A DNA stretch of 64,000 bases from Mobula hypostoma (GCF_963921235.1 NC_086110.1:13764001-13828000); one strand, 5' to 3'; numbered from the stretch's first letter, positions 1,751-50,779 are shown. Made by a program: numbers and translations. The notes: a model not told the origin generated them from the letters alone.

Positions 1751-1754
1751 CATC

Positions 1755-4700: not shown

Positions 4701-5260
4701 TTGACTTGACTTAAGTTCGGAGAAGAACATAAAGATATGTAAGGCGCTGACGTGGAGGGCTACGAACGACATTAAGGAAATCTGGGAGTCGAACCAGAGC
4801 AGAGGGCTTACAAAGAGGATCTTAATCGCAGACATAAAGTTCATTCTCATGTACGGATGCGACACGTGGACACTCACCAAGACTATGCGAAAGTCTCCAG
4901 TTGGTTGATCTACCTGAATGCTCCGGAGTTGGCAACAGCATATGTCGAACATCGAGCTCTATGACGACCTACCGATGCTCACCACTAAAGTCGAGGCGGG
5001 AAGACTGGAACTAGCGGGGCACTGTCTTTGCCCCCTTGATCTATCTGCCAGCCTAGTCATCATATGGGAGCACACGCATTGCGTGGATTAACCCTGGGTG
5101 CTCTCCCAAGACTATGGCCAACACGCTGCCAGAAGACAGCGGCGCGGCTAATGTAGGTGAACTGAGCACACCGATGAGGGAAAGGGAGAAGTGGAGAGTC
5201 TGTCATCGTGACCGATGCCGGCCCCTTAGGCCTGCGTCGACGTGGTGGCAGTAGTAGTAC
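1755..5260 (+). mobile_element. RTE-clade LINE (RT region to 3' end), split by a nested Rex1/Babar element
   Basis: GVLQGD..APY, LDFADDIVLLS, KYLGSRM at 1755-2322. Resumes at 4713 (SSEKNIKI..ALTW) and ends in a gtagtagta tail. Confidence 0.85.
2323..4712 (+). mobile_element. Rex1/Babar-like non-LTR retrotransposon, 5'-truncated and degenerate
   Basis: RT motifs QGCVLSPLLF and IIKFADDTTVVGLI, C-terminal KKAQQR..FL..LRK, and a (gactt)n tail at 4687-4712. Confidence 0.88.
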
Positions 5261-6129
5261 GGTGGAGATACGTGCAGTGGAAGAGAGCCTGTTGAACAAA
5301 TGAGAATCAGTGGATACAATGGTTTTGCACTCCCGAAATGCTGTTTTTATAGATGTTGCATAAGAGTTTATGAGCGGGAATAAAGCAGTGGGAATGAGGA
5401 TAACGTACAGACATGCTTACAGAAAGAAAAAAAAGGAACAAACACATCTTTTTCTTCGTGATTGTAAGAGATCTGTGGAGTTTTGCAGAGATTACAGATG
5501 GTGTCCCATTTTTTCACAGCGTATGTTGCTGATATGGAGGAGGGAATTAAATGTAACATTTCCAAATTTGTGTTGTACACATAGTTGAGGGGTGAGGTCA
5601 GGGCAGTTCGTGAATTGTCATGAGGATGAAAAGAGGCTCCAATGACATTTTGACAATATGGATGTGTATGGCAACTATTAACAGGTTATCCAATTTGTTT
5701 CTAAAAGCAATGATAGATTCTGAATGATAATAGATTAAGAAAGGGGCAGGTGCATTGAGACCAATTTGACCTTTTACACTGTTTACTAAAAAGTTTCAAA
5801 TACAACAAGCATTTAGGAAGGCAAGTTATTCAATATGTTTCAATACGTACGTATAATGTCACAGAAAAGTATACAATATACATCCTGAAATTCCTTTTCT
5901 TCGCAAACATCCACGAAAACAGAGCAGTGCCCCAAAGAATGAATGACAGTTAAATGTTAGAACCACAAACCCTCCTGCAACTCCCGCCTGCCACACACGA
6001 ACAGCAGCAAGATAATACCACCTCTCCACCCTAAACAGCAAAAAGCATCGGCGCCCCACATCAAGCACCCAAGCATACAGAAAATCATCAATAAAGACAC
6101 AAAAGCAAAGACAAATACTACTCCTTTAT

Positions 6130-6257
6130 NNNNNNNNNNNNNNNNNNNNNNNNNNNNNNNNNNNNNNNNNNNNNNNNNNNNNNNNNNNNNNNNNNNNNNN
6201 NNNNNNNNNNNNNNNNNNNNNNNNNNNNNNNNNNNNNNNNNNNNNNNNNNNNNNNNN
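6130..6257. other. Assembly gap (128 N)
   Basis: Run of N in the sequence. Confidence 1.
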
Positions 6258-11419: not shown

Positions 11420-12170
11420 GGTTTTGAGCACAGGTGAATATTTCTGATATGTTCCTTGAAGGTGGAATCATGGCGCACAGTTTCCTGAAAATGGAAACTC
11501 ATGTGGCTAAGGTAGTCAAGAAAGCTTTCGGTATGCTGGTCTTAATAAATCAGAGCATTGTCTACGGGAGTTGGGATGTAATGCTGAAATTGTGCAACGC
11601 ATTGGTAAGGCCACAATTGGAGTATTGTGTACAGTTCTGGTCACCGAATTATAGCAAAGATGTCAACAAAATTGAGAGAGTACAGATAAGGTTTATAAGA
11701 TTTACTAGAATGTTACCTGGGTTTCATCTCCTAAGTTACAGAGAAAGGTTGGACAAGTTGGGTCTTTATTCTTTGTAGCGTAGAAGGTTCACGGGGGTCT
11801 TGACAGAGGTACTTAAAATTATGAGGGGGATAGATAGAGTTGACGTGGATAGGTTTTTTCCTTTGAGAGTAGGGGAGATTCAAACAATAGGACATGAGTT
11901 GAGAGTTAAAGGGCAAAAGTTTAGGGTAACATGACGGGGAACTTCTTTACTCAGAGAGTGGCAGCTGTGTGGAACGAGCTTCCAGCAGAAGGGCTTCAGG
12001 CAGGTTCTATGTTGTCATTAAAAGTTAAATTGGATAGCTATATGGACAGGAAAGGAACGGAGGGTTATGGGCTGAGCGCAGTTCGGTGGGATGGGGTGAG
12101 AGTAAGCGTTCGGCACGGACTAGAAGGGCCGAGATGGCCTGTTTCCGTGCTGTAATTGTTATATGGTTCT
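11420..12170 (+). mobile_element. CR1 LINE 3' fragment in the LRRC36-like intron 2
   Basis: RPQLEYCVQFWSPNYSKD and NFFTQRV motifs; tail gtaattgttatatggttctat. Confidence 0.9.
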
Positions 12171-12605
12171 ATCGCAAAAATTTCAAAATACTCTGAGGAG
12201 TCATAGAGGGAATTAAAATAACTCAAAAAGGTTCAAATTATGCAAGAAAATGAAATAAAACAGCAGAGATGCTACAAATTATTTTACGGTTTTTAAGTGA
12301 ACGCAGCAAGGTCCTCTTAAAGCAGTTCGTTGCCATTAAAATCAGTAGGCTCACTGATCATGATTTATTCCTGGTATCTACCTGATCATTGCATCTGCCA
12401 ATGTCAGCTTGGCAAAATCCTGGGGAAAAAGGTGAATTCAGTAACTTTCATAAGAAAGGCACATACACTGAGAAATAGTAAATCAGAATGAAGATTAATA
12501 TCGTCGGCATTTGCTGTGAAATTAATTAACTTAGGAGAAGCAGTATGAAGCAACACCAGACAAATATACAAAAAAAATCAATTCGGGTACATATATACAC
12601 TGTAC

Positions 12606-12829: not shown

Positions 12830-15660
12830 TTAAGATATATAGAATATAGAATATGGAACACAGAAAACAAAACATGAAATATAAAACAAAGAATAGTACA
12901 GCATACTTCAGGCCCTTCGGCCTACAATGTCGTGCCGACCCTTAAACCCTGCCTCCCATATAATTCCCCACCTTAAATTCCTCCATATACCAGTCTAGCA
13001 GTCTCTTAAATTTCACTAGTTTATCTGCCTCCACCACTGTCTCAGGCAGTGCATTCCACGCACCAACCTTCCTCTGATATACCGCTTCAAATTCCCACCC
13101 CTTACCTTAAAACCATGTACTCTTGTATTCAGCAGTGGTGCACTGGGGAAGAGGCGCTGGCTGTCCACTCTATCTATTCCTGTTAATATCTTGTATACCT
13201 CGAGCATGTCTCCTCTCTTCCTCCTTCTCTCCAAAGTGTAAAGCCCTTGCTCCCTTAATCTCTGATCATAATGCATTCTCTCTAAACCAGGCAGCATCCT
13301 GGTAAATCTCCTCTGTACCCGTTCCAATGCTTCCACATTCTTCCTATAGTGAGGCGACCAGAACTGCACACAGTACTCCAGTGTAGCCTAACCAGAGTTT
13401 TATAGAGCTGTATTATTACCTCGCCACTCTTAAAGTCTATCCCTTGACATATGAAAGCTAAATCCCATAGGCTTTCTTAACTAAACTATCTACCTGTGAG
13501 GCAACTTACAGGGATCTGTGGACATGTACCTCCAGATCCCTCTGCTCCTCCACACTACCAAGTATCCTGCCATTTACTTTGTACTCTGCCTTCCAGAGTG
13601 TACCACCTCACACTTCTCCGGGTTGAACTCCATCTGCCTCTTCTCAGCCCACGTCTGCATCCTATCAATATCTCTCTGGAATCTTCGACAATCCCCGACA
13701 GTATCCAAAACAGCACCAACCTTTGTGTCGTCTGCAAACTTGCCAACCCACCCTGCTACCCCCACATCCAGGTCGTTAATAAAAATCACGAAAAGTAGAG
13801 GTCCCAGAACCGATGCACGAATCATAACACTCCAATCCATATGTACTCCCTCCACCGCAACCTTCTGCTTTCTGCAGGCAAGCCAATTCTGAGTGCACCT
13901 GGCCAAACTTCTCTGGGTACCATGCCTGCTGAATATCTGATTAGCCTACCGCGTGGAACCTTGTCAAAAGCCTTACTAAAATTCATGTAATTCACATCCA
14001 CTGCTCTACCCTAATCTATATGCCTGGTCACTTCCTCAAAACTCTATCAGGGTTGTTAGACACCATCTGCCCTTCACAAAGCCATGCTAACTGTCCCTGA
14101 TCAGGCAATGATTCCCGAAATGCCCATAGATCTATATCTAAGAATCCTTTCCAAGAACTTTCCCACCACAGAAGTAAGGCTCACTGGCCTATAATTATCC
14201 GGACTATCCCTATAACCTTTGTTGAACAAAGAGACAGCTTTCGCCTCCTTCCAATCCTCCGGTACCATTCCAGTGTACAACGAGGATGGAAAGATCATAG
14301 CCACAGGCACTGCAATCTGTTCCCCCGCCTCGTGGAGCAGCCAGGGGAGTATTTCATCATGTTCCGGGGACTTATCCGTCCTATGTATTTTATCAACCCC
14401 AACACTTCCCCTCCGTTAATATCAACATGCTCCAGAACACCAACCACACTCATATTGTCCTGACCGTCATCCAGTTCCCTCTCATTGGTAAATACCGATG
14501 GGAAGTATTCATTGAGGAGCTCGCTCACTTCCACAGCTTTCAGGAACATCTTCCCATTTTTATCTCTAATCGGTCCTACCTTCACTCCTGTCATCCTTTT
14601 GTTCTTCACATAATTGAAGATTGCCTTGGGGTTTTCCTTTACCCTACTCACCAAGGCCTTTTCATGCCCCCTTCTTGCTCTCCTCAACTCCTTTCTTGCT
14701 ACCCTATATTCCTCAATAGACCCCTCTGACCCTTGATTCCTAACCCTCATGTATGTTGTCTTCTTCTACCTGACTAGATATTCCACCTCACTTGTCACCC
14801 ATGGTTCCATCACCCTACCATTCTTTATCTTCCTCACCGGGACAAATTTATCCCTAACATCCTGCAAGAGATCTTTGAACATCGACCACATGTCCATAGC
14901 ACATTTCCTTTCAAAAACATCATCCCAATTCACACCCGCAAGTTGTAGCCTTACAGTCTCATAATTTTCCCTTCCCCAATTAACAATGTTCCTGTCCCCT
15001 CTGATTCTGTCCTTTTTCATGACAATGCTAAAGGCCAGGGAGCCGTGGTCATTGTCCCTCAGATGCTCACCCACTGAGAGATCTGTGAACTGACTCGGTT
15101 AGATATGTAATACGAGATCTAGTATGACATTCACCCTTGTTGGCCTGTCAAATATTGTGACAGGAATCGGTCCTGCACATACTTAACAAACTCTGCCCCG
15201 TCTAAACCGTTGGAACTAATCAGGTGCCAATCAATATTAGGGATGTTGAAGTCACCCATGATAACAACCCTGTTATTTTTGCACCTTTCCAAAATCTACC
15301 TCCCAATCTGCTCTTCGGTATCTCTGCTGCTACCAGGGGCCCTATAGAATACCCCCAATAGAGTAACAGCTCCCTTCCTGTTCCTGACTTCCATCTATAC
15401 TGACTCAAAAGAGGATCTTGCTACATTACTCATACTTTCTGTAGCTGTAATAGCATCCCTGAGCAGTAATGCCACCCTTCCTCCTCTTTTATCCCCTCTT
15501 TCTCCCTTTTAAAGCACTAAAATCCAGGAATATTGAGAATCCATTCCTGTCCTGGTGCCAGCCAAGTCTCTGTAATGGCTACCACATTATAATCATGTAT
15601 GTATCCAAGCTCTCAGTTCATCACCTTTGCTCCTGATGCTTCTCGCATTGAAGTACACGC
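12830..15660 (-). mobile_element. Degenerate CR1 LINE (endonuclease to 3' end)
   Basis: [35 protein letters not shown] and QFWSPHYRK in minus-strand ORFs; tail at about 12830-12900. Confidence 0.9.
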
Positions 15661-22545: not shown

Positions 22546-22916
22546 ATAGTACTAATGTTAGAGAAGTTGAGGTTTTAAATGTGATTGCAATCAAATTGAT
22601 TGCCTAAAATTGTAACTCCTGACAGCTAACTAAAATCGCCAATTTACATCACAACGCTAAAATCTACATCATCGCCCCGAACTTCGACTTCTATCCAAAT
22701 ACCTCCCTCTGCATTATTAGTTTTTTTTTTCATTTAGCGCTTTTTTTTAACTTGTTGGAAATTTTGCTATGAAATACGCTACACACAAGTTCATATGGAC
22801 TGTAAATAATGTAGAAGGAGTTCGTGGGAAAAATGCATTTCACATTTTGTTTTGTGTTTGTACAGTTGTCCAGGTTCATTCAGTGCAGATCTTCCTTTCA
22901 ATGTTTCCAGTCTAAT

Positions 22917-23210
22917 CTTGTTAGATAATACAGATGAGTCTGGCAGGAACGTTCACGATTCGTGAGATATCCAGTGAAAACAACTTTTCCCTGACAGGCT
23001 GTGCATCTCCAATGTGCTAGAAGCCTCATAAACTCCTTCTCATAAAAGTTCCGTTTATTACGGCTTTTATCCTGGTTAGAATTTCTGTATTATTTTGTAT
23101 CCAAAAGATTTCTGATTTATTTGGGTAAAAGGCTACCGTTTTATATTTGAGTTTCCGGGAATTTGGTGAGGTCCCTTTATCACGAATGATTTTCAGCGGA
23201 GTTTGAGGAA
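22917..23210 (-). pseudogene. Decayed C1-set exon of SIRP-like paralog B
   Basis: Aligns by eye along its length with 63331-63627 (ccgctgaaaatcattcgtg; gaggcttctagcac; tatctcacgaa). First Cys TGT is TAT, second Cys codon is deleted, there are frameshifts and stops, and the donor is caag|attaga instead of caag|gtaaga. Confidence 0.9.
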
Positions 23211-23300
23211 CTGCAACGTAATAAAACGCCAGATTGAATTTTCAGCTATTATTTCAACGCATGTGTTCTCTGTCGAACAGTGGTATGCTGCCACTCCCAA

Positions 23301-24477
23301 TCTATATACTACTAAAACTCCCATGCTCTGTTTGTCTGTTTGTGACCTCCAATTAGCGCAAACGTTAGATTACATCGGCACTATTTTTGGCTAAATCGAC
23401 TTAAATGCGCTATCTTACGGAATGCAGGCAAAGTTCAGGGTTATATATTCGTATAGAATTGCTCACTTGTCAAAATCAACAGCCCCGCTTTCACCCGACA
23501 GCCGATGTCAGCCATGACGGAAACCGCGACGCGACACCACGACGGATGCGCATGGCCAGCCTTAGCAGCAACTCACGGTGCTCACAGCAGCGACACCAAC
23601 CGGAGCAAAAGGGCAAGGCAGCTCTATCTCCAGCGGTCACATTCTGCTAATCACCACCAGCATGGGCAGGATTGGGACAGATCAAACTGAATGACATCAA
23701 TAAGAGATAATTAAATTTATTGTAATGACGTACTTCGAGACACCCATCAAACCCTTTGCTACAGTCAAAGGACAGCGGTGACTATAACACGTCCAATTAG
23801 GAGAGCGCCAACCACATCACAAGAAAAATCTGCATCCTGGAGGCTTTGGTGATACTGCTTCGTGTCTTCTATTCAGCATTAGGGTAAAAAAAAATATGCC
23901 GCGCGGAAAGAGAAGGGGGACATTATGGTTAAGAGATGACGCCAAACGTCGTCGGGAAGGGGCAAGGAGAGGAACAGAACGAGAATCGGATGAGGCCAGG
24001 GCAGTACGACTTTAATTTCAAAGAGTCAGGATAAAAAAGATGAGAGAATAAGAGACAGAAGAGGAGAGGCATGGTCGTCTCCAAAATGACAACAACTGGC
24101 ATAGAAGGAGGAGAGAGGAAGAGACAAAGAAGCTGAGAAATGCACGTCTCCAGGATCAGAGACAAAGAACAAACAGCAGAAAAGATGACGAGATGGGGGA
24201 TGAAAGCACTGCACGTCTACAGAATGACAACGAGAGGCACAAGGGTGGCAGATCAACCAGAAATAATGCCATCAAAAGCGTCCTTCGTTAACAGAGGCGG
24301 AGCTATATTTGCCTTGCTAAGCGTCGTTCTTCTTTAATAAACTGAGGTTTTCTGCTTCAATTTCCAAAGCAAAGCGATATCAATAGCATTCAGGAAAATG
24401 TAATGTTTATTCTGGTCACATCAGATTGCACTACCCTTCTCTCAAGCGGTGCCCCAATGGGTCGCCCCGTTGTCTAG
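23301..24477 (+). mobile_element. Non-autonomous Helitron (1177 bp)
   Basis: A|TCTATATAC start, subterminal GC hairpin (ggtgccccaatgggtcgcccc), CTAG|T end and no TSD. Carries a decayed MPRGKRR..ESDEARAVRL..EETEEERHGRLQ repeat ORF. The empty site is seen in the paralog at 63709/63710. Confidence 0.88.
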
Positions 24478-24659
24478 TTGCTATTATTGCTGTTTCAAAA
24501 CCACTGAGATTGTCCTTTAATACTTTGTTTCACGGGGCAAGTAAATATGACCCAGCCAATCACAAGGCAAAACACAAACAAGGAAAAACTTAGTGCTGAC
24601 TATAGGCGAGGAACGCGGGACTATTTGGAATGGACGAAGCAGATTTAGCGCATGTTGAC

Positions 24660-27600
24660 AGTAGCCCTTTATGTCTCCTTGCAACCGGCCATTTTTTCCA
24701 CTCCTCTGCCCTTTCAGAGGTTCATTTTGTAATGAAGCAAAATGAATGGCAGTGACTGGAGTTGAGGAGCAAAGGTTCACACAGTGTTCCATATCTGCCA
24801 GATAGAACTCGGTGTTCCCAGTTGAGTTTCCCTGAAAGAAGTATCCGAAGATTGTATTGAGGTCAATTCAGGTAATTTGGAATTTGAGAAGACCTACGGA
24901 TTGGTCCAAGATCGTTTCCGTTGGACACGAGTGAAGCCTGAATTTAAAAAGTACCTTATGTCGTGCATCCAATATATTCGGAGGAAGAAGCTGCCGACTA
25001 GAGTGTCTATCAGACGCTGCCACTATCCCATTTACAAAGAACAGAACGACTTAATTTAGGGTGTATGTAATCCTTCCATAGAGCTTAATTCCAGTAACAC
25101 TGCGAATGTCTTGGTCATCACCGACTAATACACCAGATATGGCTCAAACATTCTCCACTAAGGATCAGAGCATATCCATAGTTGCCAAAGTGTATAGGAT
25201 AAATTATTATTCATTATGGATGCACAGTGACCAGGGAAGGGATTTTAAGAGTCGGACCATATATGAGTTACTCAGTATGCTTCGAGTTATGAAGTCAAAG
25301 ACTACGCATGTCACCCCCAAGGTGATCCTCAGCCTGAAATATTCAACAGAACATTGCTAGACATGCTTGGGACTCTGGATGCCAGCAGAAAGAGAAAGTG
25401 GAGCCAACTAATTAGATATTTGATACACTGCTACAACTGGACACAAAATGAAAAAAAAAACTGGCTACTCCCCATACTATTCGATATTCGGGCAAGAAAC
25501 GAGGTTACCTATAGACATTTGCTCTGGAACCTCCGGGTTGGGGGGGTGGGGAAGAACTTTCTCCAGAACATGTATCTCAAGTATGTGTCTAACGTGAGGA
25601 AAGAAATGTAAAAATCACGTGAGCTAGCAGCAGTTTTGGTTAGCAAGCAAAAGCGCGGAAACCAGAAGAGATACGGTCAAGGATTCATGTTCTGTCAGTT
25701 GGTGCCTCGAGAAAGAGTTCTAATCATAAACTTGGTACTACAGCGGAAGCATATGTTTGCCAACCACTCGGTTTCTATGTCTTGCGTGTCAGGGTCCGGT
25801 CCGTCGATCCGTATTCCAGGTTTTCCGGTATTCCCTTGTCCTGTTGTGTTTCCAGTTTTCCCTTAATTGAGGCACATGATTCTCATTTTGGTCTGGCTAC
25901 ATAAATAGCTCCTGGGTTCAGCTTCATTTCCTGGACTGTTCCCTTCCGTTCCCTTCACTTTCCTCTTCCTCCTGAAGCCTTGACTGCAACCTTCGTCTGA
26001 AGCCTTTTCTTGCAATCATGCCTGCAAACTTTGCCTGAAGCCTTGCAAGCGTCCTCGCCTGTATCGCTTTCAAGTTCTACCGCCGGAGCTAGACCGGAGT
26101 TTTATTGTGTCTACATAAGGAATTGTCCATCGTTGTTTGGAACTGTCTCTGTATCCACGCCTTCAATAGGTAGGTCCGGCCGCTTGCCGCTACCTTGTGT
26201 TGAGAACCGTCTCTGTGTGCACGCCTTCGCTAGGTAGGTCCGGCCGTTTGCCGCTACCTTGTGTTGGGAACCTTCTTGTCGTGTTCAGCATTCTGTGTAT
26301 GAGCGCTAGGTGCTGTTCCCAAGGAGTGGTCCCAGCTCTGTCTTCTGTGTATGAGTCCAGGCCCTACGTCCTGTTCCCAAGGAGATGCCCTGGCTCATGT
26401 TCCATGTTCCTGTCTCTCAATTTCAAGGCTCCATGTTCCCATGCTCTAGACCAAGGCTGCGAGCTTCTAGTCCTCGTCCAAGGCTACGAGCGCCCAGTCC
26501 TCGTCCTAGGCTCTCGGGTTCCTGTCTCCCAAGACCACGGTTCTGTGCTTCCTGTTCTTCCAAACCCAAGTCAGGGCTTCGGGGTGTCGTCCTGTCCTTG
26601 TGCCTCGCCCAGCCCAGGAGTACCTCGCCCTGTCCAGGAAAGCCTCTAAGAATCCAAGTCTCGTCCAGTCCTGTAGCCACATCATGCCTTCGCCTAGTTC
26701 TGGAGTCCGAGCCCGAGTTAGGACCCAGGTTTTGCGTCCTTGTCCTGTCTCTGGCTCGGAGTCCATACCCAAGCCTCGAAGAACCCAAGCCTCGTCATGT
26801 CCTCGCCTAGTTCCGAGGTCCGAGCCGATTCAAGACCCAGGTCCTGGGTCCTTGTCAAGTCTCTGGCTCGGAGTCCAAGCCCAGGCTCCAGGTTCCAAAG
26901 TCCTTGTCCTGGTCCCACTTTCCTAGCCAAAGTCCTAGCCCAAGTCTATGTTTTTGTCCCAGCTCCTAGTCTGTGTCCTGTCATGTCCCTAACTCTAGTC
27001 CTAGTCCTGTTATGACGGAATAGCCCAGTCATACATATATCCAGCGACACAGGCACTATCGTGTTACTGTCGCCATCCTGAGTTCTCTCCTGTCGCATGA
27101 CCCCCCGCCCCGCCCCGCCCGCCCGTGTCGTCCATAGTCTAAGGAAGCCTTTTCGGTAGCCAAGAGCCTCCCATTGAGGAGAGGTGGTACTGTCATGGCC
27201 CGGTCTTTGAAGTCCGTTTTCCGGTTCAAGGTCCAGTTCATCGATCCGTATGCAAGGTTTTCCGGTTTCCCTTGTCCTTTTGTGTGCCTTAATTGAGACA
27301 TATTATTCTCATTTTCGGATGGCTACGTAAATAGCTCCTGGGTTCCGCTTCACTTGCTGGACTTTTCCCTTCCCTTCCCTTCACTTTCCTCTTCCTCCTG
27401 AAGCCTTGCCTGAAGCCTTTGCCTGCAACTTTGCCTGAAGCCTTGCCCTCGTCATCGCCTGTATCACTGTCAAGTTCTACAGACGGAGTAAGACCGAAGC
27501 CTTGCTGTGTCTTGATAAGGAACTCTCTATCGTTGTTTGGAACTGTATGTTTGTGTCCTGGCCTTCGCTAGGTAGTTCCGACCGTTTGCTGCTACCTTGA

Positions 27601-29295
27601 GTTGGGAACCGTCTCTGTGTCCACGTCTACGCTAGGTAGGTCCGGCCATTTGCCACTACATTGTGTTGCGAACCGTCTCTTCCTGTTCAGCATTCTGTTT
27701 ATGAGTCCCGGCCCTATGGCCTGTTCCCAAGCAGGGTCCCGGCTCTGTGTTCTGCATATGAGTCCCGTCCCTACGTCCTGTTCCCAAGGAGGGGTCCCGG
27801 ATCTGTGTTCCATGTTCCTGTCTCTCAAGTCCAAGGCTCCGTGTTCCCGTGCTCTCGACCTTGGCTCCAAGCGTCCAGTCCTCGTTCAAGGCTCCGAGGT
27901 TCCTGTCTCCCAAGACAATGGCTCTTGTGTTTCCTGTTCTCCGAGGACCAAGTCAAGGTTTCGCGGTCCCGTCCTGTCCTTGTGCCTCGCCCAGTCCAGG
28001 ATACCTCGTCCTGCCCAGGAAAACCTCGAAGAATTCAAGTCTCATCCAGTCCTGTAGCCACGTCATGTCCTGGCCTTTTTCTGGAGTCTGAGCCCGAGTC
28101 AAGACTCAGGTTTTGGGTTCCTGTCCAGTCTCTAGCTCGGAGTTCATACCCAAGCCTCGAAGAACTCAAGCTTCGTTATCTCCTCGCCTAGTTCCGGGGT
28201 CCGAGCCGAGGGAAGACCCAGGTCCTCAGTCCTTGTCCAGTCTCTGGCTCCGTGTCCAAGACCAGGCTCCTCGTTCCAAGTTCCTTGTCTAAGTCGCGCT
28301 TTCCTAGCCAAAGTTCTAGCCCAAGTCTGTGTTCCTGTCCCAGCTCCTAGTCTCTGCCCTGTCATGTCCCTAAATCTAGTCCCAGTTCTGTTCCAAGGAC
28401 TTCGGTGTCTGAGTCTTGCATTTGGATCCGCTCCCAGCGCCCCCGTTATGACATTGCCTGGTGGAAAGCCAGATGTCAAATTTGCTAGATTTCCTGGTGA
28501 AGCCCTAACATGGCAATCGTCTTGTCAATATTCTTCATTAGAACCATCTTTTACTCCAAGGGCAGGAATTGCATGTTAGCCCAGAGTCTGAAATGGAGCC
28601 CACACCAAGTAGAAAACTCTGCGCAGAAGGAGAATAGAAATGCAACAAACTGACAATAGTGTGATTTCAGAGGAAATTCATTAGAATATTGTGATACTAA
28701 TAATAAATAAAGACGCTCGCAGAATCCGCCAGAAGGGGAGACCCTGCTGTAAGATGTGATTTGAGAAGACGAATAGGCACATGAAAGAAATGTAAATATT
28801 TCTCAGTTCGCCAGTTCGTTTATAACCATCTTCCGGGGAAGTCCAGACTGTGGCTGCGGACATGGGTTCATCACCGAGTACTTAAAGTGAAGCACTCGAC
28901 TATCCAAAAAATGAGCTGGACGTTCATGTGCACACTTTGACTGGTTTAACTGTAATGGGCCCTTTACCTTTATTATTCTATTAACTTTTTTTTTAAGTTG
29001 AAATACCTGTAAATATGCTTCCGCTTTAATTTTATGCCGGTATAAGTTCTGTCAATTCCTGGTGAAAGATAAATGTGCGTGGGGCAGTAATGATACAGCA
29101 TTCACCGCAATTTTCGTTCCAATAGAACAATCCACCTTTCCATTTTAGTTGACCTCGGATTATACCGACTCTCGACATGTGTTGCTTATTGACTGTGGCC
29201 TTCGCACAGTTACTCATGCAAAACTGGGTCACGTGGTTGTTAGCCAGGGTCACTAACAAGCCTCGCTTGTTACGAGCATCAGTGAGAGCGTAACA
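24660..29295 (+). mobile_element. Degenerate Gypsy LTR retrotransposon (integrase region and 3' end), interrupted at 25787-28453
   Basis: EKTYGLVQDRFRW..SCIQ (H2C2 region), HSDQGRDF and HPQGDPQPEIFNRTLLDMLGTL. The frame continues across the insertion as SMSCVVESQM. Ends gtaaca at 29295. Outer limits approximate. Confidence 0.85.
25787..28453 (+). mobile_element. Non-autonomous LTR element: LTR (25787-27017), 173-bp internal region, LTR (27191-28453)
   Basis: TGTCA...TGACA termini, TSD TTGCG/TTGCC, two diverged direct repeats of about 1.25 kb each with an ataaata TATA-like box, and purine-rich gaggagaggtgg-tac just before the second LTR. Confidence 0.85.
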
Positions 29296-29389
29296 CCGAA
29301 AGTAACCTTTCACAAAATTCCCGCAATCTCGCGTTAGTCAAATTGCAAAGAGAGGAAAACCTTCTGCTTCCAGGATCAAAGGCACTAAT

Positions 29390-29770
29390 TAATACAGCAG
29401 CCGAGAGCCACTTTTATTTCCGACAATTTGCTGCTGACTTTTCACTTGACAACAAAACACTCCAAAGACTGCGACACTAACATTCAGGAGGGTAAATGTA
29501 CCCTTGTTATTCTTTACATTGAACTACTGTTTTCTGCTAACTGATTCTATAAATGCCCCCTCCCGGGTAAATGTACCCTTGTTATTCTTTACATTGAACT
29601 ACTGTTTTCTGCTAACTGATTCTATAAATGCCCCCTCCCAAACGGAACTTCAGCAATATTCTGTAGAACTGGAAATTTGGAGAACATGGATGCAGTCCCA
29701 CCGATTGCGACGTTTAAGATCAGAGGGATTACTCCACTTTGACTGAAGTTGCTTTTACGGTTGACAAATC
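29390..29770 (-). pseudogene. Decayed VJ-type Ig V exon of paralog B
   Basis: Reads ..QSGVIPLILNVAIGGTASMF(S)KFP.. then, after a frameshift, VWEGAFIESVSRKQ*FNVKNNKGTFTLLNVSVAVFGVFCCQVKSQQQIVGNKSGSRLL. First Cys is TCC, the DxGxYxC motif has decayed to VFGVFCC, and a J-like GNxSGSRLL follows. Acceptor reads cacttat, and there is an internal 75-bp tandem duplication. 3' boundary approximate. Confidence 0.8.
29490..29639. repeat. Perfect 75-bp tandem duplication inside the V pseudo-exon
   Basis: 29490-29564 is identical to 29565-29639. Confidence 0.97.
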
Positions 29771-29937
29771 ATAAGTGAGAAAAATGAAAACAGTTGCATA
29801 CACTGTACAAAGAATCAGTAGACGAAGTAGGAAGAAGAATGAAGAAAAGTCAAAGTGTAATTAATCTATAATCTAACTAGTGTATAATTTTATAAATTGT
29901 CTTAGCTCGGAAAAATTCGTACAATAATGAAGCGTAC

Positions 29938-29982
29938 CTTGTCAAAATACAGCGAAAAAAGTCACTCACTGAGCTGTTGCAT
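29938..29982 (-). pseudogene. Candidate leader exon of paralog B
   Basis: ATGCAACAGCTCAGTGAGTGACTTTTTTCGCTGTATTTTGACAAG|gtacgc. It is 45 nt with an in-frame TGA, and lies 167 nt upstream of the V exon, the layout expected for an Ig-type leader. Confidence 0.5.
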
Positions 29983-30184
29983 CTGTAAGTTTTAGCAAAT
30001 AAAACAAAGTGACGCTTTATGTTTAATAGAAGTTAAACATTGTAACATGTTTAATTGAACTCCAAAACCTACACACTAAAGTGCACTGACACTCTTTACG
30101 TGATAACCCGAATGTAATTACGTTACCCGACACAGCGCCTCCCCAACCCAACACGCAACCCCCCACCCCCATCCCCCCGCAAAG

Positions 30185-30665
30185 AGTCTACTTTCGGAAT
30201 GAGGTCACATTCAGTTTGGACGAGACATATCTTATGTTCCGCCAGGGTAACCTGCAACCTGATTACATGAACATCGATTTTTCGAACTTCCGGTAATGCT
30301 ACCTTTCTTCACCATTCCCGATTCTCACTTCCCTCTCTCGCCTTGTCTTCTTACCTGCCGATCACCTTCCTCGTCTGTTCTTCCCCTTTTTCTTTTTTTT
30401 TTCCATGGCCTTCCATCCTCTCCTACCAGATTACCCCATCTCCAGCCTTGTATCTCTTTCAATAATCAACTCCCCAGCACTTTAGCTCACCCCAGCTCCA
30501 GTGTTCACCTGTCACCTTGTGGCTCTTCCTCCGCTCCTCTCACCTTATTACTTGACTCCTCATATTTCCCCAATTCTGATGAAGGATGTCGGCACGAAAC
30601 GTCGATTGTGCTCTTTCTCTAGATGCTGCCTGGCCTGTTGAGTTCCTCCAGCATTTTGAGTGTGT
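30185..30665 (+). mobile_element. Penelope-like element 3' fragment
   Basis: End of the GIY-YIG ORF (gggtaacctgcaacctgattacatgaacatcgat) followed by the pyrimidine-rich tail shared with 39340-39750. Confidence 0.75.
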
Positions 30666-37777: not shown

Positions 37778-39750
37778 AACAACAGGAATTCTGCAGATGC
37801 TGGAAATTCAAGCAACATACATCAAAGTTGCTGGTGAACGCAGCAGGCCAGGCAGCATCTGTAGGAAGAGGTGCAGTCGACGTTTCAGGCCGAGACCCTT
37901 CGTCAGGACTAACCGAAGGAAGAGTGAGTAAGGGATTTGAAAGTTGGAGGGGGAGGGGGAGATCCAAAATGATAGGAGAAGACAGGAGGGGGAGGGATAG
38001 AGCCGAGAGCTGGACAGGTGATAGGCAAAAGGGGATACGAGAGGATCATGCGACAGGAGGCCCGGGAAGAAAGACAAGGGGGGGGGGTGACCCAGAGGAT
38101 GGGCAAGAGGTATATTCAGAGGGACAGAGGGAGAAAAAGGAGAGTGAGAGAAAGAATGTGTGCATAAAAGTGAGTAACAGATGGGGTACGAGGGGGAGGT
38201 GGGGCCTTAGTGGAAGTTAGAGAACTTGATGTAACGCAAACAACAGGAATTCTGCAGATGCTGGAAATTCAAGCAACATACATCAAAGTTGCTGGTGAAC
38301 GCTGATGACTGCATTGGCGCTGCTTCCTGCACGCATGCAGAACTCGTTGACTTTATTAACTTTGCCTCCAACTTTCACCCTGCCCTCAAGTTTACCTGGT
38401 CCATTTCTGACACCTCCTTCCCCTTTCTAGATCCTTCTGTCTCTGTCTCTGGAGGCAGCTTATCCACTGATGTCTACTATAAGCCTACTGACTCTCACAG
38501 CTATCTGGACTATTCCTCTTCTCACCCTGTCTCTTGCAAAAACGCCATCCCCTTCTCGCAATTCCTTCGTCTCTGCCGCATCTGCTCTCAGGATGAGGCT
38601 TTTCATTCTAGGACGAGGGAGATGTCTTCCTTTTTTAAAGAAAGGGGCTTCCATTCCTCCACTATCAACTCTGCTCTTAAACGCATCTCCCCCATTTCAT
38701 GTACATCTGCTCTCACTCCATCCTCCCACCACCCCACCAGGAATAGCGTTTCCCTGGTCCTCACCTACCACCCCACCAGCCTCCGGGTCCAACATATTAT
38801 TCTCCGTAACTTCCGCCACCTCCAATGGGATCCCACCACTAAGCACATCTTTCCCTCCCCGCCTCTCTCTGCATTCCACAGGGATCGCCCCCTACACAAC
38901 TCCCTTGTCCATTCGTCCCCCCCATCCCTCCCCACTGATCTCCCTCCTGGCACTTATCCATGTAAGCGGAACAAGTGCTACACATGCCCTTACACTTCCT
39001 CCCTTACCACCATTCAGGGCCCCAAACAGTCCTTCCAGATGAGGCATCACTTCACCTGTGAGTCGACTGGGGTGATATACTGCGTCCGGTGCTCCCGATG
39101 TGGCCTTTTATATATTGGTGAGACTCGACGCAGACTGGGAGACCACTTTGCTGAACATCTACGCTCTGTCCGCCAGAGAAAGCAGGATCTCCCAGTGGCC
39201 ACACATTTTAATTCCACATCCCATTCCCATTCTGACATGTCTATCCACGGCCTCCTCTACTGTAAAGATGAAGCCACACTCAGGTTGGAGGAAAAACATC
39301 TTATATTCCGTCTGGGTAGCCTCCAACCTGATGGCATGAACATCGACTTCTCTAACTTCCGCTAAGGCCCCACCTCCCCCTCGTACTCCATCTGTTACTC
39401 ATTTTTATGCACACATTCTTTCTCTCACTCTCCTTTTTCTCCCTCTGTTCCTCTGAATATACCTCTTGCCCATCCTCTGGGTCACCCCCCCCCCTTGTCT
39501 TTCTTCCCGGACCTCCTGTCCCATGATCCTCTCGTATCCCCTTTTGCCTATCACCTGTCCAGCTCTCGGCTCTATCCCTCCCCCTCCTGTCTTCTCCTAT
39601 CATTTTGGATCTCCCCCTCCCCCTCCAACTTTCAAATCCCTCACTCACTCTTTTTTCAGTTAGTCCTGACGAAGGGTCTCGGCCTGAAACGTCGACTGCA
39701 CCTCTTCCTACAGATGCTGCCAGGCCTGCTGCGTTCACCAGCAACTTTGA
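37778..39750 (+). mobile_element. Penelope-like element with GIY-YIG endonuclease and inverted terminal arms
   Basis: Open frame to 39365 with RT C-terminus (DD..FLD..TDVYYKPTDSHSYL) and GVIYCVRCSRCGLLYIGETRRRL. Arm 37778-38232 is the reverse complement of 39340-39750. TSD TGAAAGAGTACAGA. Confidence 0.93.
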
Positions 39751-43586: not shown

Positions 43587-46099
43587 CGGAGGTCAAAGTG
43601 AAATTCATTTCTTTTAATGTTAATAAGCTGTTGAATCCAGTCAAGCGCAGTAAAGTTCTATCAAAGATGAAAATAGAACAATTCCATTCTGTATATTTAC
43701 AGGAAACTCACTTAAGAAATAATGAGCATGGAAAATTGAAGAGAATGGGCTTTACTAATTTAGTTTTCTCCTCATATACATCACTACATAGAAGAGGGGC
43801 TGCCATTGTCATCTCAAGCAAGTTAAATCTGGAAGAAGTATTCGAAATGGGAGATAAGGAGGACAGATATATTCTGGTAAGGGGGAATATAGATGGAAAT
43901 CCAGTTACTTTATTGAATATATATGCACCCCAGGAAGTGATATTACTTTCTTCAAGAAAATTACTAATATTATGGTAACGGAAACAGAAGGTCTCTTGAT
44001 GGGTGGGGGAGACTTAAATTTAGAATTACAAAGTTAAATTCTTCCAATAGAAAAACCTATGCAACAAAGTCCTTACATAAGAAAGTTAACACACTTTTTG
44101 AGGATATTGGTCTAATGATATATGGAGGGACCATTCCCTGACCAAAAGGATTACACTCATTATTCTGCCCTATTTCCATATATACAAGAATAGACTATTT
44201 CATAACATTTGGAAAAGATAGAGACAAAATAATCACCTGTGGAACTGGGACAATAGATGTAAGTGACCATTCACCGAAATATTTATCTGTTGATTTTGAC
44301 CTACAACCAAAGAATATTATTTGGAAACTAAATTCAAGTCTACTCAATGATCTTTATTACAAGGAACAAATTAAAAAAGAAATTGGTCTTTACTTAGAAC
44401 TCAATGATGATAATGGTGAGGTTTCACCTCCCATTCTATGGGATACTCTGAAGGCTGTCTTAACAGGGAAAATTATCGCGATATCTTCATATAAGGAAAA
44501 AAAAGAATAAAACATTAGAGGAATTACAAAATAAGCTGAAAGAACTAGAAAAAAAACAAATTGAGTTTGGCACAGGATACATTAGAGACAATCTTGAAAA
44601 ATCAGAATGAAATTAATAGTTTGGCTACACAAGAAATTAGAAAAAATAATGTTTCTAAAACAGAGACACTATGAAATTGGATCTAAATCTATGAATATAC
44701 TGGCGTGAAAAATTGGATCTAAATCTATGAATATACTGGCGTGAAAATTGAAAAAAAAAATAGCAGAAAATACGATTCATAGAATTAGGGATCCGAGAAC
44801 AAAAGTGATTTAAAAAAAAAGCGAACTGAAATTCAAGAAGCTTTTGAAATGTTTTAAATTTCTTGTGTAGCCAAACTATTAATTTCATTCTAATTTTTCA
44901 AGGTTGTCTCCAATGTATCCTGTGCCAAACTCAATTTGTGTTTTTTTTCCAGTTCTTTCAGCTTATTTTGTAATTCCTCTAATGTTTTATTCTTTATTTT
45001 TTTCTTATATGAAGATATCGCGATAATTTTCCCTCTTAAGACAGCCTTATATATTCCCTCTATATCCCAAAGTTCCAGTGGAAGCATAACCCAAATTGGC
45101 ATCTTCCTGGATTCTTTAGAAATACCCACTTTAAGTAAAGAACAAAACAAAACGATGACTGCTGACATAACTGAAGCTGAACTTCAAACTGCAATTAGTA
45201 GGCTTACATTAAGCAAGTCAACAGGACCTGATGATATACAGCAGAGTGGCATAAAGAGTTCAGGACTGAGTTAATTCCTGTTTCACTAGCCACACTGAAC
45301 TGGGCCCAAAGAGAGGCGCAAATGCCCCCCAGCTGGAAGGATGTAATAATCTCAGCTATACCGAAAGAAGGCAAGAAAAAAATGGAATGTAGGTCATTTA
45401 GATCAATATTTGTTCTTAATGTGGATTATACAATATTTACCTCCATCATGGCCAAACGATTAGAAGATTTTCTACCCACACTGATACACAAAGATCCAAC
45501 AGGTTTTACACAACGCCAAACACAAGACAATATACGAAAGACACTTCACATTATGGATCATATAAAGGAATGAAATTGAAGTAATAGTGATAAGCGTGGA
45601 CGCTGAAAAGGCATTTGATTCGGTTAAATGGAATTTTCTTTACATAGCTTTAAATATATTTGGTTAACAGGATACAATTATTATAACTATACAGACACTA
45701 TATGACAGTCCTACTGCCAGGATTAAAATCAATGGATATTTATCTAATAGTTTTACCCTAGAAAGGGGCAGGAGACAGGGTTGTGCATGGTCACCGCTAC
45801 TCTTTGCATTATATCTGGAAATATTAGCTCAACATGTCAGATAAAATGAAGATAGCAAGGGAATTAAAGGAACAGAACATAAATTGGCCTGTTGCGCGGA
45901 TGACATTTTGATCTACCTAGGGCAATCAACATACTGTTTATCTAAATTGATGCAATCCTTTGAAAAATATCAGGATCAACATCGATAAAACCCAAATACT
46001 TTCATTTAACTATTACCCACCAAGAGAAATTGAAAGTAGATATCCTTGGGCATGGCAAACGGAATCCGTCAAATATTTGGGCATCACTATGACAAAACA

Positions 46100-48200
46100 T
46101 GAAATAGTACAGCACAGTACATGCCCTTCGGCCGACCATAAAACCCTGCCCCCCATATAACGCCCCACCGTAAATTCCTCCATATAACTGTCTAATAGTC
46201 TCTTAAATTTCTCCAGCGTATCTGCCTCCACCACTGCCTCAGGCAGTGTATTCCACGCACCAATCACTCTCTGAGTAAAACACACGCCCTCGAATATCCC
46301 CCTTGAACTTCCCACCGCTTACCTTAAAGCCATGTCCTCTTGTATTGAGCAGTGGTCCCTGGAGAAGAGTTGCTGGCTGTCCACTCTGTCTATTCCTCTC
46401 AATATCTTGTATACCTCTACCATGTCTCCTCCCATCTTCCTTCCCTCTAAAGAGTAAAGCCCTAGCTCCCTTAATCTCTGATCAAAATGCATACTCTCTG
46501 AACCAGGCAGCATCCTGGTAAATCTCCTCTGTATCCGTTCCAATGTTTCCACATCCTTCCTACAGTGAGGCGAACAGAAATGGGCACAGTACTCCAAGTG
46601 TGGCCTAACCAGAGTTTTACAGAGCTGCATCATTACCTCGCGACTCTTAAACACTATCCCTCGACATGTGCAAGCTGACACCCCATAAGCTTTCTTTACT
46701 GCCCTATCTACCTGTGAGGTAACTTTCAGAGATCTGTGGACATTTACCCCAAGATCTCTCTGCTCTTGCACATTGCCAAGTATCCTGTCATTTACTTTGT
46801 ACTCTGCCTTGAACTCCACCTGCCACATCTCAGCCCACTTCTGCATCCTTTCAATGTTCCTCTGTAATCTTCGACAATCCTCTAAACTATCTACAACACC
46901 GCCAACCTTTGTGTTGTCTGCAAACTTGCCAACCCACCCTTCAAACCCCACATCCAGGTCATTAATGAAAATCATGAAAGGTAGAGGTCGCAGAACCGAT
47001 TCTTGTTTGACAGCGCTAGTCACAACCTCCAATCTGAATGTACTCCCTTCACCACGACACTCTAACTTCTGCAGCAAGACAATTCTGAATCCACCTGGTC
47101 AATCTGCCCTGAATCCCATGCCTTCTGACTTTGTGAATATGCCTACCATGTGGAATACCTTGTCAAATGCCTTACTAAAATCTATATAGATCACATCCAC
47201 TACACTACCCCGATCTATATGCCTGATCATCTCCTCAAAGAACTCTATCAGGCTTGTTAGACACGATTTTCCCTTCACAAAGCCATGCTGACTGTCCCTG
47301 ATCAGACAATGAATCTCTAAATGCCCATAGATCCTAGCTCTAAGAATTTTTCCAATAGCTGTCCCAGCACAGGTGTAAGGCTCACTGGTCTTTAATTACC
47401 CGGAATATCCCTACTACCTTTTTTGAACAAGGGGACAATATTCGCCTCCCTCCAGTCCTCCGGTGTCATTCCCGTAGACAACGAGGACATAAAGATCCTA
47501 GCCAGAGGCTCAGCAATCTCTTCCCTCGACTCGTGGAGCGGCCTGGGGAATATTCCGTCAGGCCCCGGGGATTTATCCGTCCTAATGTATTTTAATAACT
47601 CCAACACCTCCTCTCCCTTAATATCAACATGCTCCAAAACATCAACCTCACTCATATTGTCCTCACCGTCATCAAGTTCCCTCTCATTGGTGAATACGGA
47701 AGAGAAGTATTCATTGAGGACCTCTCTCACTTCCACAGCCTCCAGGCACATCTTCCCACATTTATCTCCAATCGGTCCTACCTTCATTCCTGTTATCCTT
47801 TGTTCTTCACATAATTGAAGAATGCCTTGGGGTTTTCCTTTACCCTACTGGCCAAGGCCTTTTCATGCCCCCTTCTTATTCTCCTCAGCTCCTTTTTTTC
47901 TACCCTATATTCCTCAATAGACCCATCAGATCCTTGCTTCCTAAACCTCATGTATGCTGCCTTCTTCCACCTGACTAGATCTTCCACTTCACTTGTCACC
48001 CATGGATTGTTCACGCTACTATTTTTTATCGTCCTCACTGGAACAAATTTATCCCTAGCATTCTGGAACAGATCTCTAAACATCGACCATATGTCCATAG
48101 TGCCTTTACCTGCAAAAACATCATCCCTATTCATACCCACCGATTCTAGCCTTACATCCTCATAATTTGCCCTTCCCCAATTAAAAACTTCCCTGTCCTC
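46100..48200 (-). mobile_element. CR1 LINE nested in L1 ORF2
   Basis: KFADNTKVGG, RPHLEYCAHF and VPLFKKGSRD motifs; tail at about 46100-46140. Confidence 0.9.
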
Positions 48201-50779
48201 TCAGATTCTCTCACTCAGAGATTTGTTATTTGGCAAAATCATCAGAATGCAATTATCAGGCTATATATATAAAAATAAGAAAGGTATAACAAGATTGAAC
48301 CTAATTCATTTTCCTGGTCTCAGTTCAAGGATTGAATCCATTAAAATGAATATACCGCCCAGACTACTATATCTCTTTCAAACGCTACAAATAGAGATGA
48401 ACAAAAATCGAACAAGATGATATCAATATATATATATATATAGCAAGGTAAACGGCCTAGGGTTCGTCTCAAAACTTTGCAATTAGCCAAAGGAAAGGGG
48501 GGATGGGGCCTACTTTCTCTTAGAGATTATTATTTTGCACCACAGTTGAGAGCCGTGATATGTTGGTTCAACTTATCCTATGACGCTGAATGGAAAACAT
48601 TGAAGAGAGGATACTTTCGATCCCCATACAAGCAATTTTGGTTGATAACAACCTACAAAGTTACATAAATAATATTGAAACCCGTGGGTGAAATGGACTC
48701 TTAAAATATAAGAAACTATTATAAAAGAATATAAACTAGAGAGAGACATTACAAATATTAAATGGTGTGCATATGACTCGGATTTTACGCCGAATTAACT
48801 GGATACTAGATTTAAGGACTGGACAGCTAAAGGAATAACAGCTATTTGCAATATAATGAAAGAAGGAACACTGTTCAGTTTTGAAATGTTCAACGAGAAA
48901 CACTTATTAGAAAAACAAGACTTTTACCGGTATTTACAGATGCGACAGTATGTTAATAGGACTTTTAAAAATGTAACCAAGGCAAGTACATGTCTGATAG
49001 AGCTATTTAGAAAAGCATATAACTCAGACAACGGTAGTAGAATAATTTCAAGCGTGTATAACGGTTTGTCAAATCTTAAAACACGTTCAACTTCATACAT
49101 TAAAACAAAATGGGAGAAGGAGGGAGGATAATAATATCTGAGGAAGACTGGACAATAATATGGAGGTATCAATGGAAGTATACCAGTTCACAGAAATGGA
49201 GGGAGTTCGGGTGGAAATACTTGATAAGATAGTTTATTACACCCTCTCAGAAATTCCATTATGACAGTAACCCCCCTGCTTGCTGGAGAGATTGTGGAAA
49301 TCAAAATGCAAGCCATTATCATATTTTCTGGGAATGCCCCGTTATCAAAGACTTTTGGACTGGGATACATATTGCCTTAAAAGACATCTTTAAATGTGAA
49401 ATAACCTTAGAGAGTAAGACCATATATTTTGGGTTTAAACCTCAAGAATGGTTGAAAAGTGATAAATATTTAATGAGTGTACTGCTGGTGGATGGTAAAA
49501 AGATCATCTCTAGGAAATGGTTACCACAGGACAGCCCAACTTTAAATGTGTGGATGGAAATTACAATGCACATTTACAAAGTGGAGAAGATAACAGCATC
49601 TGTTAATCATAAGTTGAAACAATTTTATTCATACTGGAAAAAATGCTTTAACTACATAACACCTCATAGGCCTGTTTTTATTCTCACAAGTCAATGAATA
49701 TGTTGTAAAAAAAAGATCACTCGCTACTCTGTACATAGTTTTATTCTTTCGATTGTTCTTTCTTTCCTCTCCTTTCTATAAGTGTATACCTCAGATAAGT
49801 ATTATGTGGAGATTGCGACAAATATGATTATATGACATATATGTACAGTGTCTGAAATACATCTTGTGGTAATGTTTGATGATGAAATGCAATAAAAAAA
49901 TAAGAAACCCGTGATGTCCGAATCAAAGATAATTCAAATTGAATCGATTTCTACTTGCTTGGATATGGTCTACTTCGTGCCATTTTGTGCCTGTTCATGT
50001 GAATATTCGAATGTCTTTAACGGTTGTGATCACATCAGCATTCTCTGGTAGCGCGTTCAAGTCAACAACCATTCTCTGTGTAAAATACTTGCCACGTAAA
50101 GTTCACTTAATTTTTCCTCTTTTATCTCAAGGCGACGCCCTCCAGTAACTTACACTAATATTCCCGAGCTATACTCACAGAAAGAATGACAAGGCTAACA
50201 TTATTAGGGAATCCCGTTTGACGAACGTATTAAGACACTGGTCAGGAGAAAAGAGTTCTGAATCTTCTACAGGGAACGGGCGCAAGTGCGCCCCTTCAGA
50301 ACTATAAGAGATATTCTGGTACACTTTAGGGCAATCTTGACAGCTCAAAGATGGCATGAAATAGGTTGTAAAATATATTACGAGGAAGTGAGGAAATAGC
50401 GACTCTGAAGGAACAGTGTGATCATTTTTGTGTGGAGCCACAGACGATGTCTGAGCTGCAGATTATTATTTCTCATCTGTATAACTGTGCTGAAAATCAT
50501 TGCAGCGAAGGAATTAAGGGGAATTCATAGCAATGATTTTCAAAAATCTATATGGGAAAAGAGGAGGAGTGGTGATGGGCCGGAGGATGGGCGGAATGAG
50601 GGGTGGGTACTTGCTGAGTGAGAATACAGTATGTTTCATGAGCCTGATCAAGTGTATTGGTCGACATTGTGGGATGGTAGGACAGGAATTGCGAGGACAA
50701 TTGTAGTGATATGACCACCGTCTTTTACCAGGATTGTGGTACCAGAACACTAGAGTGTGGATAATGTGCATTTATTTAA

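Follow-up and report, generated by a model that had tools for sequence, protein, structure and literature searches.

A dead paralog with a germline-joined VJ-type V exon and a single C1 exon in a receptor gene cluster of the ray Mobula hypostoma

Introduction

NKp30 (NCR3), the teleost NITRs and the chicken PRARPs carry a variable (V) domain whose G strand resembles a joining (J) segment built into the domain itself, and they do not rearrange. NKp30 has a V domain only, and the NITRs, which are of V or V-I type, lack a C1-set domain; the NITRs occur as multigene clusters under birth-and-death evolution, with pseudogenes and with members bearing immunoreceptor tyrosine-based inhibition motifs (ITIMs). 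This report concerns the remains of a gene with a V exon of this VJ type, followed by a single C1 exon, on the minus strand of a 64,000-nucleotide stretch of the genome of Mobula hypostoma, the lesser devil ray (GCF_963921235.1 NC_086110.1:13764001-13828000; hereafter the window, with positions counted from its first letter). The relic, at 22917-29846, is a dead paralog of an intact neighbor, here called gene A, and is real, well supported and ordinary. Pseudogenes of KIR, LILR and immunoglobulin (Ig) V genes are likewise tandem duplicates that keep their introns while gathering stops, frameshifts, splice-site losses and transposon insertions; compared with these unprocessed pseudogenes of immune clusters, the relic is a typical example and differs in nothing notable.

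The closest systems are the living genes of the same family in cartilaginous fishes, which encode a VJ-type V domain and a C1 domain, in many cases followed by a transmembrane (TM) segment and an ITIM tail. Chondrichthyan examples are gene A, its M. birostris ortholog P0162, a second Mobula paralog (P0164/P0163) and Hypanus XP_059849401.1. The relic shares with them homologous V and C1 domains (60-68% amino acid identity after frame correction), the exon order, the strand, the C1 splice acceptor, the J-like strand and the "PPTP" start of C1. It differs in being dead, with no ATG, with stops and frameshifts, with cysteines and the C1 splice donor lost, and with no TM or tail exons. A published description of the VJ-C1-ITIM family was not found in the literature searched, which yielded only papers on UrIg/UrIg2 and on the MHC (major histocompatibility complex), on different genes.

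NKp30 and PRARP are named in PMC10751288. UrIg and UrIg2 are non-rearranging, VJ antigen-receptor-like genes of elasmobranchs in which a one-exon VJ is followed by several C domains (PMC12227049). UrIg is MHC-linked and has several C domains; UrIg2 is single-copy, is linked to the antigen-receptor complex and combines three unique C domains with duplicated pairs of C2/C3, giving 9-11 C domains in sharks (PMC12227049). The ray family differs from both in its one C1 domain, its ITIM tail and its multigene organization, and does not classify as UrIg; UrIg2 (PDB 9dmx) is among the PDB matches to the C1 domain of gene A, at E=2.9e-9.

Mammalian SIRPs and the living relatives of the relic are the same in outline: an N-terminal V domain carrying a J-like strand precedes one or more C1-set domains, and a TM segment leads to a tail with ITIMs, although SIRPs combine one V with two C1 domains and the ray family has one C1. 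When the C1 domain of gene A was searched against the PDB, SIRP-gamma was matched at E=1.3e-8, with better scores for Ig constant domains, MR1 alpha-3 and UrIg2. For the V domain the best matches were I-set domains, Ig light-chain V domains and amphioxus IgVJ-C2, and no SIRP or NKp30 V domain was among the 60 PDB matches listed. A likeness to SIRP and NKp30 had been proposed in the first-pass annotation of the window; it holds for the architecture and finds no counterpart among those V-domain matches. The origin of the SIRP family has been placed in tetrapods by a 2026 survey (PMC13262535). With one C1 domain, no SIRP V domain among the matches listed and a tetrapod origin of SIRPs, SIRP orthology is therefore not shown.

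Results

The relic was found in two exon remnants lying, like gene A, on the minus strand and about 34 kb from it. In blastn, 22831-23274 aligned to 63237-63691 in the same orientation (74.6% identity over 460 bp, E=1.7e-75), so that the C1 exon homologous to gene A and on the same strand, as proposed earlier, was recovered. The C1 pseudo-exon itself occupies 22917-23210 (294 nt) and has 76.8% DNA identity in global alignment to the 297-nt C1 exon of gene A (63331-63627, minus strand). The 5′ intron flank of the relic has 75.9% identity to that of gene A, matching the exon value, as is expected without coding constraint. By tblastn the C1 relic was detected at E=7e-15, and when framed on gene A, 55 of 92 residues were identical. 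The intact exon of gene A scored 37.3 bits on Pfam C1-set (PF07654; cutoff 21), and pieces of the C1 relic, only 31-61 amino acids long, gave no match.

The V pseudo-exon occupies 29389-29758 (minus strand) and is readable in three frames: KATSVKVE, then TAA; IPLILNVAIGGTASMFSKFPVLQNIAEV; and then WEGAFIESVSRKQ and FNVKNNKGTFTLLNVSVAVFGVFCCQVKSQQQIVGNKSGSRLL. The third frame runs as (V)WEGAFIESVSRKQ, TAG, FNVKNNKGTFT, a 75-bp repeat and LLNVSVAVFGVFCCQVKSQQQIVGNKSGSRLL. The F and G strands of the domain adjoin in the DNA (...GVFCCQVKSQQQIVGNKSGSRLL), and CCQVKSQQQIVGNKSGSRLL lies within one stop-free piece (29392-29523), in which the J-like G strand is joined to the F strand in a single exon. 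Since the two strands are contiguous in DNA, V and J are germline-joined, and the V exon with a built-in J-like strand that the first-pass annotation had described is present. The J-like motif at 29395-29424 is degraded yet recognizable: it reads VGNKSGSRLL against FGNGSGSQLIV in the family (G-x-G-S/T-x-L-x-V), with FGNG changed to VGNK.

In a tblastn search of the window with the V domain of gene A, the V relic was matched at E=1e-18. After frame correction, with X at the breaks, 63 of 93 residues were identical to the V domain of gene A (P0001; 68%), compared with 62% for Hypanus P0003, 54% for Narcine and 35-40% for other Mobula paralogs. A profile was built from 29 V domains of the family and gave 54.1 bits (E=2e-15) for the composite relic over profile positions 22-122; when the three closest relatives were left out of the profile, the score was 40.7 bits (E=3e-11). 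The best of 200 shuffled versions of the relic reached 9 bits. On the family profile, the stop-free piece spanning the D to G strands had E=6.8e-10 among the 3138 six-frame pieces of the window. The expectation that the translation would match a V-type profile after frame repair was thus borne out on the family profile, and Pfam was blank on the short pieces: Pfam V-set (PF07686) gave no match at E<=10 for the stop-free V pieces, which are only 42-44 amino acids long. Intact V domains of the family do exceed the Pfam V-set cutoff of 26 (P0017, 55.9 bits; gene A, 28.4 bits).

These values leave a negligible chance that the exon relics are a product of chance or low-complexity matching or of misassembly. 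Such an explanation could draw on the empty Pfam results for every stop-free piece and on short-read contigs that are broken by the 75-bp repeat. It is opposed by the blastn value of 1.7e-75, by the tblastn values of 1e-18 (V) and 7e-15 (C1), by a profile score of 54 bits against shuffles of at most 9, and by DNA contigs of the same species (X1), which reproduced 29200-30100 with zero differences. In those contigs the 75-mer was present at about twice the k-mer depth of its flanks, and the reads therefore bear out the duplication.

About 15 lesions were mapped in the relic, comprising stops, frameshifts, a 75-bp exact tandem duplication, the loss of three of the four canonical cysteines and a change of the C1 donor from GT to AT. 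In the alignment of the V pseudo-exon to the gene A protein, TAA at 29729-29731 replaces a Gln codon (VEQ), and an adjoining 1-nt deletion at ~29728 shifts the frame. A net deletion of 10 nt at 29640-29648, seen in the protein-level alignment, causes the second frameshift and removes one Trp of the WW motif together with K and QK (the WW(K)EGQK segment). The duplication occupies 29490-29639; its copies (29490-29564 and 29565-29639) are 100% identical and lie inside the V exon, and each contains an extra in-frame TAG (29524-29526 and 29599-29601). From the D.G.YYC motif, Tyr-Tyr and Asp have been lost.

The first-pass annotation had stated that of the canonical cysteines only the second of the V domain survives, and this is exactly what was found. 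The V Cys2 codon is kept as TGT (29449-29451); the V Cys1 codon is TCC (Ser; 29679-29681), C1 Cys1 has changed from TGT to TAT (23143-23145), and the C1 Cys2 codon was removed by a 4-nt deletion at ~22974. That deletion is one of five indels in C1, the others being an insertion of 4 nt (23041-23044) and deletions of 1 nt at ~23008, ~22994 and ~22956, and a GAA codon has become TAA at 22921-22923. The claim that several splice sites are mutated holds in part: the C1 donor at 22915-22916 is AT instead of GT (CAAG|ATTAG against CAAG|GTAAG in gene A), the V donor is apparently TT (29387-29388) as judged from the protein-level alignment only, and the C1 acceptor is intact (gcag|TT). Measured against a functional member of the family, the locus has no ATG, carries the stops TAA, TAG twice and TAA, and has two frame changes in V, five indels in C1 and AT at the C1 donor.

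A leader-like exon ending at 29982 (ATG at 29989-29991) had also been proposed. It was rejected: it reads MQQLSE followed by a stop, has no similarity to family leaders, which are of the MS[VL]DANVW.LALLAAFWP type (for example MSLDANVWCLALLAAFWPAAKVTS), and lies at the edge of a high-copy repeat. The true remnant lies at about 29806-29846 (minus strand), where the hydrophobic run SSFFFLLRLLILC is in frame with the V exon (KATSVKVE) and stands where family leaders have VW.LALLAAFWP. The segment 29732-29846 aligned to Hypanus P0003 residues 110-148, including its leader, with a score of 57 that was reached by none of 1000 shuffles. No ATG follows the stop at 29861-29863 in the leader frame. Between the leader remnant and V lies a segment of ~45 nt (29759-29805, minus strand; VYATVFIFLTYDLS), whose equivalent in Hypanus P0003 is read as coding (VNATVFNIHNYALS) and which the Mobula models do without; a mini-intron could account for it, or else an in-frame indel. 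The repeat at 29975-30100, which adjoins the proposed leader at 29944-29991, is short and of very high copy number. In the DNA contigs of two species its k-mer depth is 760-3900, compared with 14-18 for the flanking sequence, and it also occurs in RNA-like contigs.

The intron between V and C1 (23211-29388, minus strand) is ~6.2 kb long and consists mostly of inserted repeats. Its blocks 23214-23274, 24473-24551 and 24610-24656 are collinear with the intron of gene A at 63631-63858 and are interrupted by a 1.2-kb insertion. At 25106-25611 (plus strand) a retroelement integrase remnant was recognized (170 features shared with rve clusters, Atlas score 0.93); Pfam gave no rve match in this region. 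The Gypsy insertion named earlier is supported only as such a remnant. The segments 25789-27011 and 27226-28392 are imperfect direct repeats of 1.2 kb with 80% identity. No Rep or helicase open reading frame (ORF) was found in the 25.8-28.4 kb repeats and Pfam was empty, leaving the Helitron label unconfirmed. Once the integrase remnant is subtracted, along with both 1.2-kb repeats and the insertion of 1.2 kb, the residual intron is estimated at ~2 kb or less, in place of the few hundred bp put forward before. The repeat tract at 25789-28453 is GC-rich (54%) with a strong AT skew and contains tandem units of 57-64 bp and 19-27 bp; the 1.2-kb repeats hold long P/S/R-rich ORFs with no Pfam match, and a partial reverse copy lies at 996-1292.

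Downstream of 22917 (minus strand), no significant match to TM or ITIM exons was obtained in 22.9 kb with 10 family proteins, with seven TM/tail queries or by sensitive blastn. The same searches recovered the TM and tail exons of gene A at 60251-60141, 59367-59305, ~58800-58683 (in two frames) and 58015-57920. The relic was once taken to reveal the full architecture of the gene; no TM or ITIM exons were detected in it. One collinear block was found past the position of the TM exon: 22550-22636 aligned to gene A 59722-59808 (87 bp, 78% identity, same orientation). This block may represent conserved intronic sequence or else a mobile element of small size, and it hints, weakly, that the TM exon of the relic could have been deleted rather than never copied. 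It contains an internal palindrome (59752-59770 against 22595-22577, reversed).

The missing 3′ exons are what would be seen if only the 5′ half of the gene (leader, V and C1) had been copied, giving a partial duplicate that was dead on arrival, never had a TM segment or tail and never functioned. The lack of TM/ITIM homology in the 22.9 kb downstream fits this account, as does the homology to the 3′ flank of the gene A C1 exon, which fades after ~90 bp. We nevertheless regard it as unlikely, because the 87-bp block suggests that the duplicated unit passed the TM exon, which was lost later, because the ratio of nonsynonymous to synonymous divergence (dN/dS) between the C1 relic and gene A, 0.45, hints at a period of constraint, and because many residues of the family consensus are kept in a second ray species.

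DNA contigs of that second ray (X5) covered the V exon and both flanks at 85-92% identity, with no gaps over either of the two V frameshift sites. They contain a single 75-bp unit (joint 29555->29630) and CAA in place of the TAA stop, and they match gene A at residues changed in M. hypostoma (N->D, V->I, L->P, V->F in the J motif and V->D in the D.G.Y.C motif). The V Cys1 codon is TGC (Cys) in one of the two contig variants, and V Cys2 is CGT (Arg). Read most simply, this means that frameshifts were present before the split from the second ray and that the stop and the duplication arose later in M. hypostoma.

A maximum-likelihood tree was built on V plus C1. The relic fell inside a clade (support 99/98) with gene A of M. 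hypostoma and M. birostris, the second Mobula paralog (P0164/P0163; 80% identical to gene A, with a short tail) and Hypanus P0003, with Narcine outside. Within this clade it was sister to all other members (88/93), on a terminal branch of 0.37 compared with 0.02-0.17 in living genes. An origin as an old third lineage of the gene-A subfamily is favoured by this placement, and is not proven.

Gene A corresponds to P0001 (RefSeq XP_062923620.1), which carries the name "natural cytotoxicity triggering receptor 3 ligand 1-like" and is encoded on a M. hypostoma chromosome of 80.6 Mb (GCA_963921235.1), and in a protein search its C1 exon was 100% identical to residues 223-320 of that protein. In P0001 the V domain lies immediately N-terminal to C1 (...SMFCKYPILQDTAEVSWWKEGQKAFIEPNSRNKFNVKKGRGTFTLLNVSYSDVGVYYCQVKSQQQIFGNGSGSQLIVL-TPPTPLK...). 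The sole tblastn match to this V domain inside the window was the pseudogene; the V exon of gene A thus lies past the window end, where it had been predicted.

At least six M. hypostoma proteins of the family (P0001, P0011, P0151, P0016, P0164 and P0168) are encoded on the one 80.6-Mb chromosome. V-C1 relatives were found in Callorhinchus, Scyliorhinus, Heterodontus, Amblyraja, Narcine, Pristis, Hemitrygon, Hypanus and both Mobula species, under automatic RefSeq names such as SIRP-alpha/PTPNS1-like, SIRP-beta-like, NCR3LG1-like, TCR-beta-like and PD-L1-like. In M. birostris, the ortholog P0162, at 95% identity, has the full order of leader (L), VJ, C1, TM and tail, with the motifs LAYATL, VVYAKT and LTYAAL. 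The earlier proposal of a VJ-C1-TM-ITIM family under birth-and-death evolution is upheld, with the architecture direct in P0162, at least six proteins on the chromosome and one dead copy, and birth-and-death evolution in a multigene family is accordingly supported.

Both ends of gene A's RefSeq model are probably mis-joined. XP_062923620.1 joins the TM exon (60141-60251, minus strand) to a terminal exon at 5206-5289 (minus strand), which is 100% identical to residues 357-384, and omits the ITIM-type tail exons (59367-57920) used by P0162; the resulting 55-kb intron spans the pseudogene. The first ~100 residues of the model match dispersed plus-strand repeats at 39237-39452 and 30198-30326. The tail of P0162 aligned to the gene A tail exon at 58683-58800 (minus strand) in two frames (58800-58735 and 58745-58683). 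At 60024-60236 (minus strand), P0168 and Hypanus P0003 read past the donor of the TM exon into the tail ...GVKAKRGKNMNDLT..., and the tail beyond the gene A TM exon is 84.5% identical in P0168 and 67% identical in P0003. The read-through tail suggests either that an alternative isoform with a short tail has been conserved or that paralogs share exons.

A locus of this kind could still act as DNA or RNA: it might serve neighboring V exons as a donor in gene conversion, or it might be a regulatory pseudogene that is transcribed. Its position inside the 55-kb last intron of the gene A RefSeq model, where it may be transcribed as pre-mRNA, would favor such a role, as would the signs of exon sharing in the family, with the P0168 tail 84.5% identical to the gene A TM region. 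Such a function is very improbable, however, given that no RNA-like contigs covered the relic (29200-29975), that it has diverged as much as the flanking intron, and that its terminal branch is long (0.37) and not homogenized, with no sign of conversion with gene A.

Other features of the window were a LINE (long interspersed nuclear element) family, with a reverse transcriptase (RT) remnant (RVT_1, 34 bits) at 13577-13906 (minus strand) and copies at 12883-15011, 46094-48212 and 63869-64000 (82-93% identical). The fragment at 63869-64000 is 93% identical to 12041-12172 and starts 240 bp upstream of the gene A C1 exon; it belongs to an RT-bearing LINE family, which is compatible with the CR1 label. 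A run of 128 N at 6130-6257 represents an assembly gap or a masked run.

Discussion

The segment 22917-29846 (minus strand) of M. hypostoma is, with high confidence, an unprocessed, intron-retaining pseudogene that arose by tandem duplication in a VJ-C1 receptor gene cluster and decayed without constraint. Its ancestor would have been a type I membrane receptor with a signal peptide, a V domain whose G strand served as a built-in J (G-x-G-S/T-x-L-x-V), a C1-set domain and a TM segment and, as in most members, a tail with ITIMs or immunoreceptor tyrosine-based switch motifs (ITSMs). From these motifs only, such a tail is predicted to recruit SH2 phosphatases as in SIRP-alpha, and the living family may by analogy be SIRP-alpha-like in function, as its ITIM-like motifs would suggest. 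The relic cannot encode such a receptor: the start codon is gone and V and C1 are broken by stops and frameshifts, and it is further disabled by the loss of three of four disulfide cysteines, of at least the C1 donor and of the TM and tail exons. Its lineage would have split early from that leading to gene A and paralog 2, probably before the divergence of Mobula and Hypanus. The frameshifts would have been in place by the common ancestor with the second ray species, with the TAA stop and the 75-bp duplication added later in the M. hypostoma line.

Taken to its full extent, this history would make the relic the sole Mobula trace of an otherwise extinct third lineage, predating the split of gene A and paralog 2 and possibly that of Mobula and Hypanus, and would make it, together with the less decayed copy in the second ray, an ordered series of inactivation steps; we put this forward tentatively, as a possibility that is rather doubtful. 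Several results pull against the history proposed here. Approximately unbiased (AU) tests did not reject a pairing of the relic with gene A (p=0.115), nor one with paralog 2 (p=0.059), and long-branch attraction to the base is possible, so that the timing of an old third lineage is insecure. The contigs of the second ray were matched at 85% likeness and in two variants, and could represent paralogs instead of a strict ortholog. Between the C1 relic and C1 of gene A, synonymous divergence (dS) is ~0.49 and nonsynonymous divergence (dN) ~0.23, with 62 synonymous sites only; as dN/dS is 0.45 rather than 1, the relic was probably constrained over some of its history, unless the value mostly records the constraint on gene A. 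The lesions of the V exon were placed relative to the gene A protein, the DNA of the gene A V exon lying outside the window. Finally, the absence of RNA over the relic is uninformative, because the same-species RNA-like runs were also without the C1 exon of gene A.

By itself the relic is of small weight, as tandem clusters of immune-receptor genes are expected to contain unprocessed pseudogenes, and the L-VJ-C1-TM-ITIM architecture is already visible in RefSeq proteins of M. hypostoma and its sister species. It adds one member to a large chondrichthyan gene family already annotated in RefSeq. In the shark-and-ray census of VJ-C1-ITIM genes that member is a dead one, which supports birth-and-death evolution. 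It also reveals a probable mis-join across a pseudogene in gene A's RefSeq model, and together with the contigs of the second species it provides a natural experiment, on a small scale, in how the events of decay were ordered. If the relic is indeed a third lineage, the shared frameshifts came first, followed by the stop, the loss of cysteines and the 75-bp duplication. The family, and not the relic, has a bearing on how rearranging antigen receptors arose; a third lineage, if true, would document birth-and-death turnover in germline-joined VJ-C1 receptors, a family with a bearing on the form of the antigen receptors that preceded RAG.

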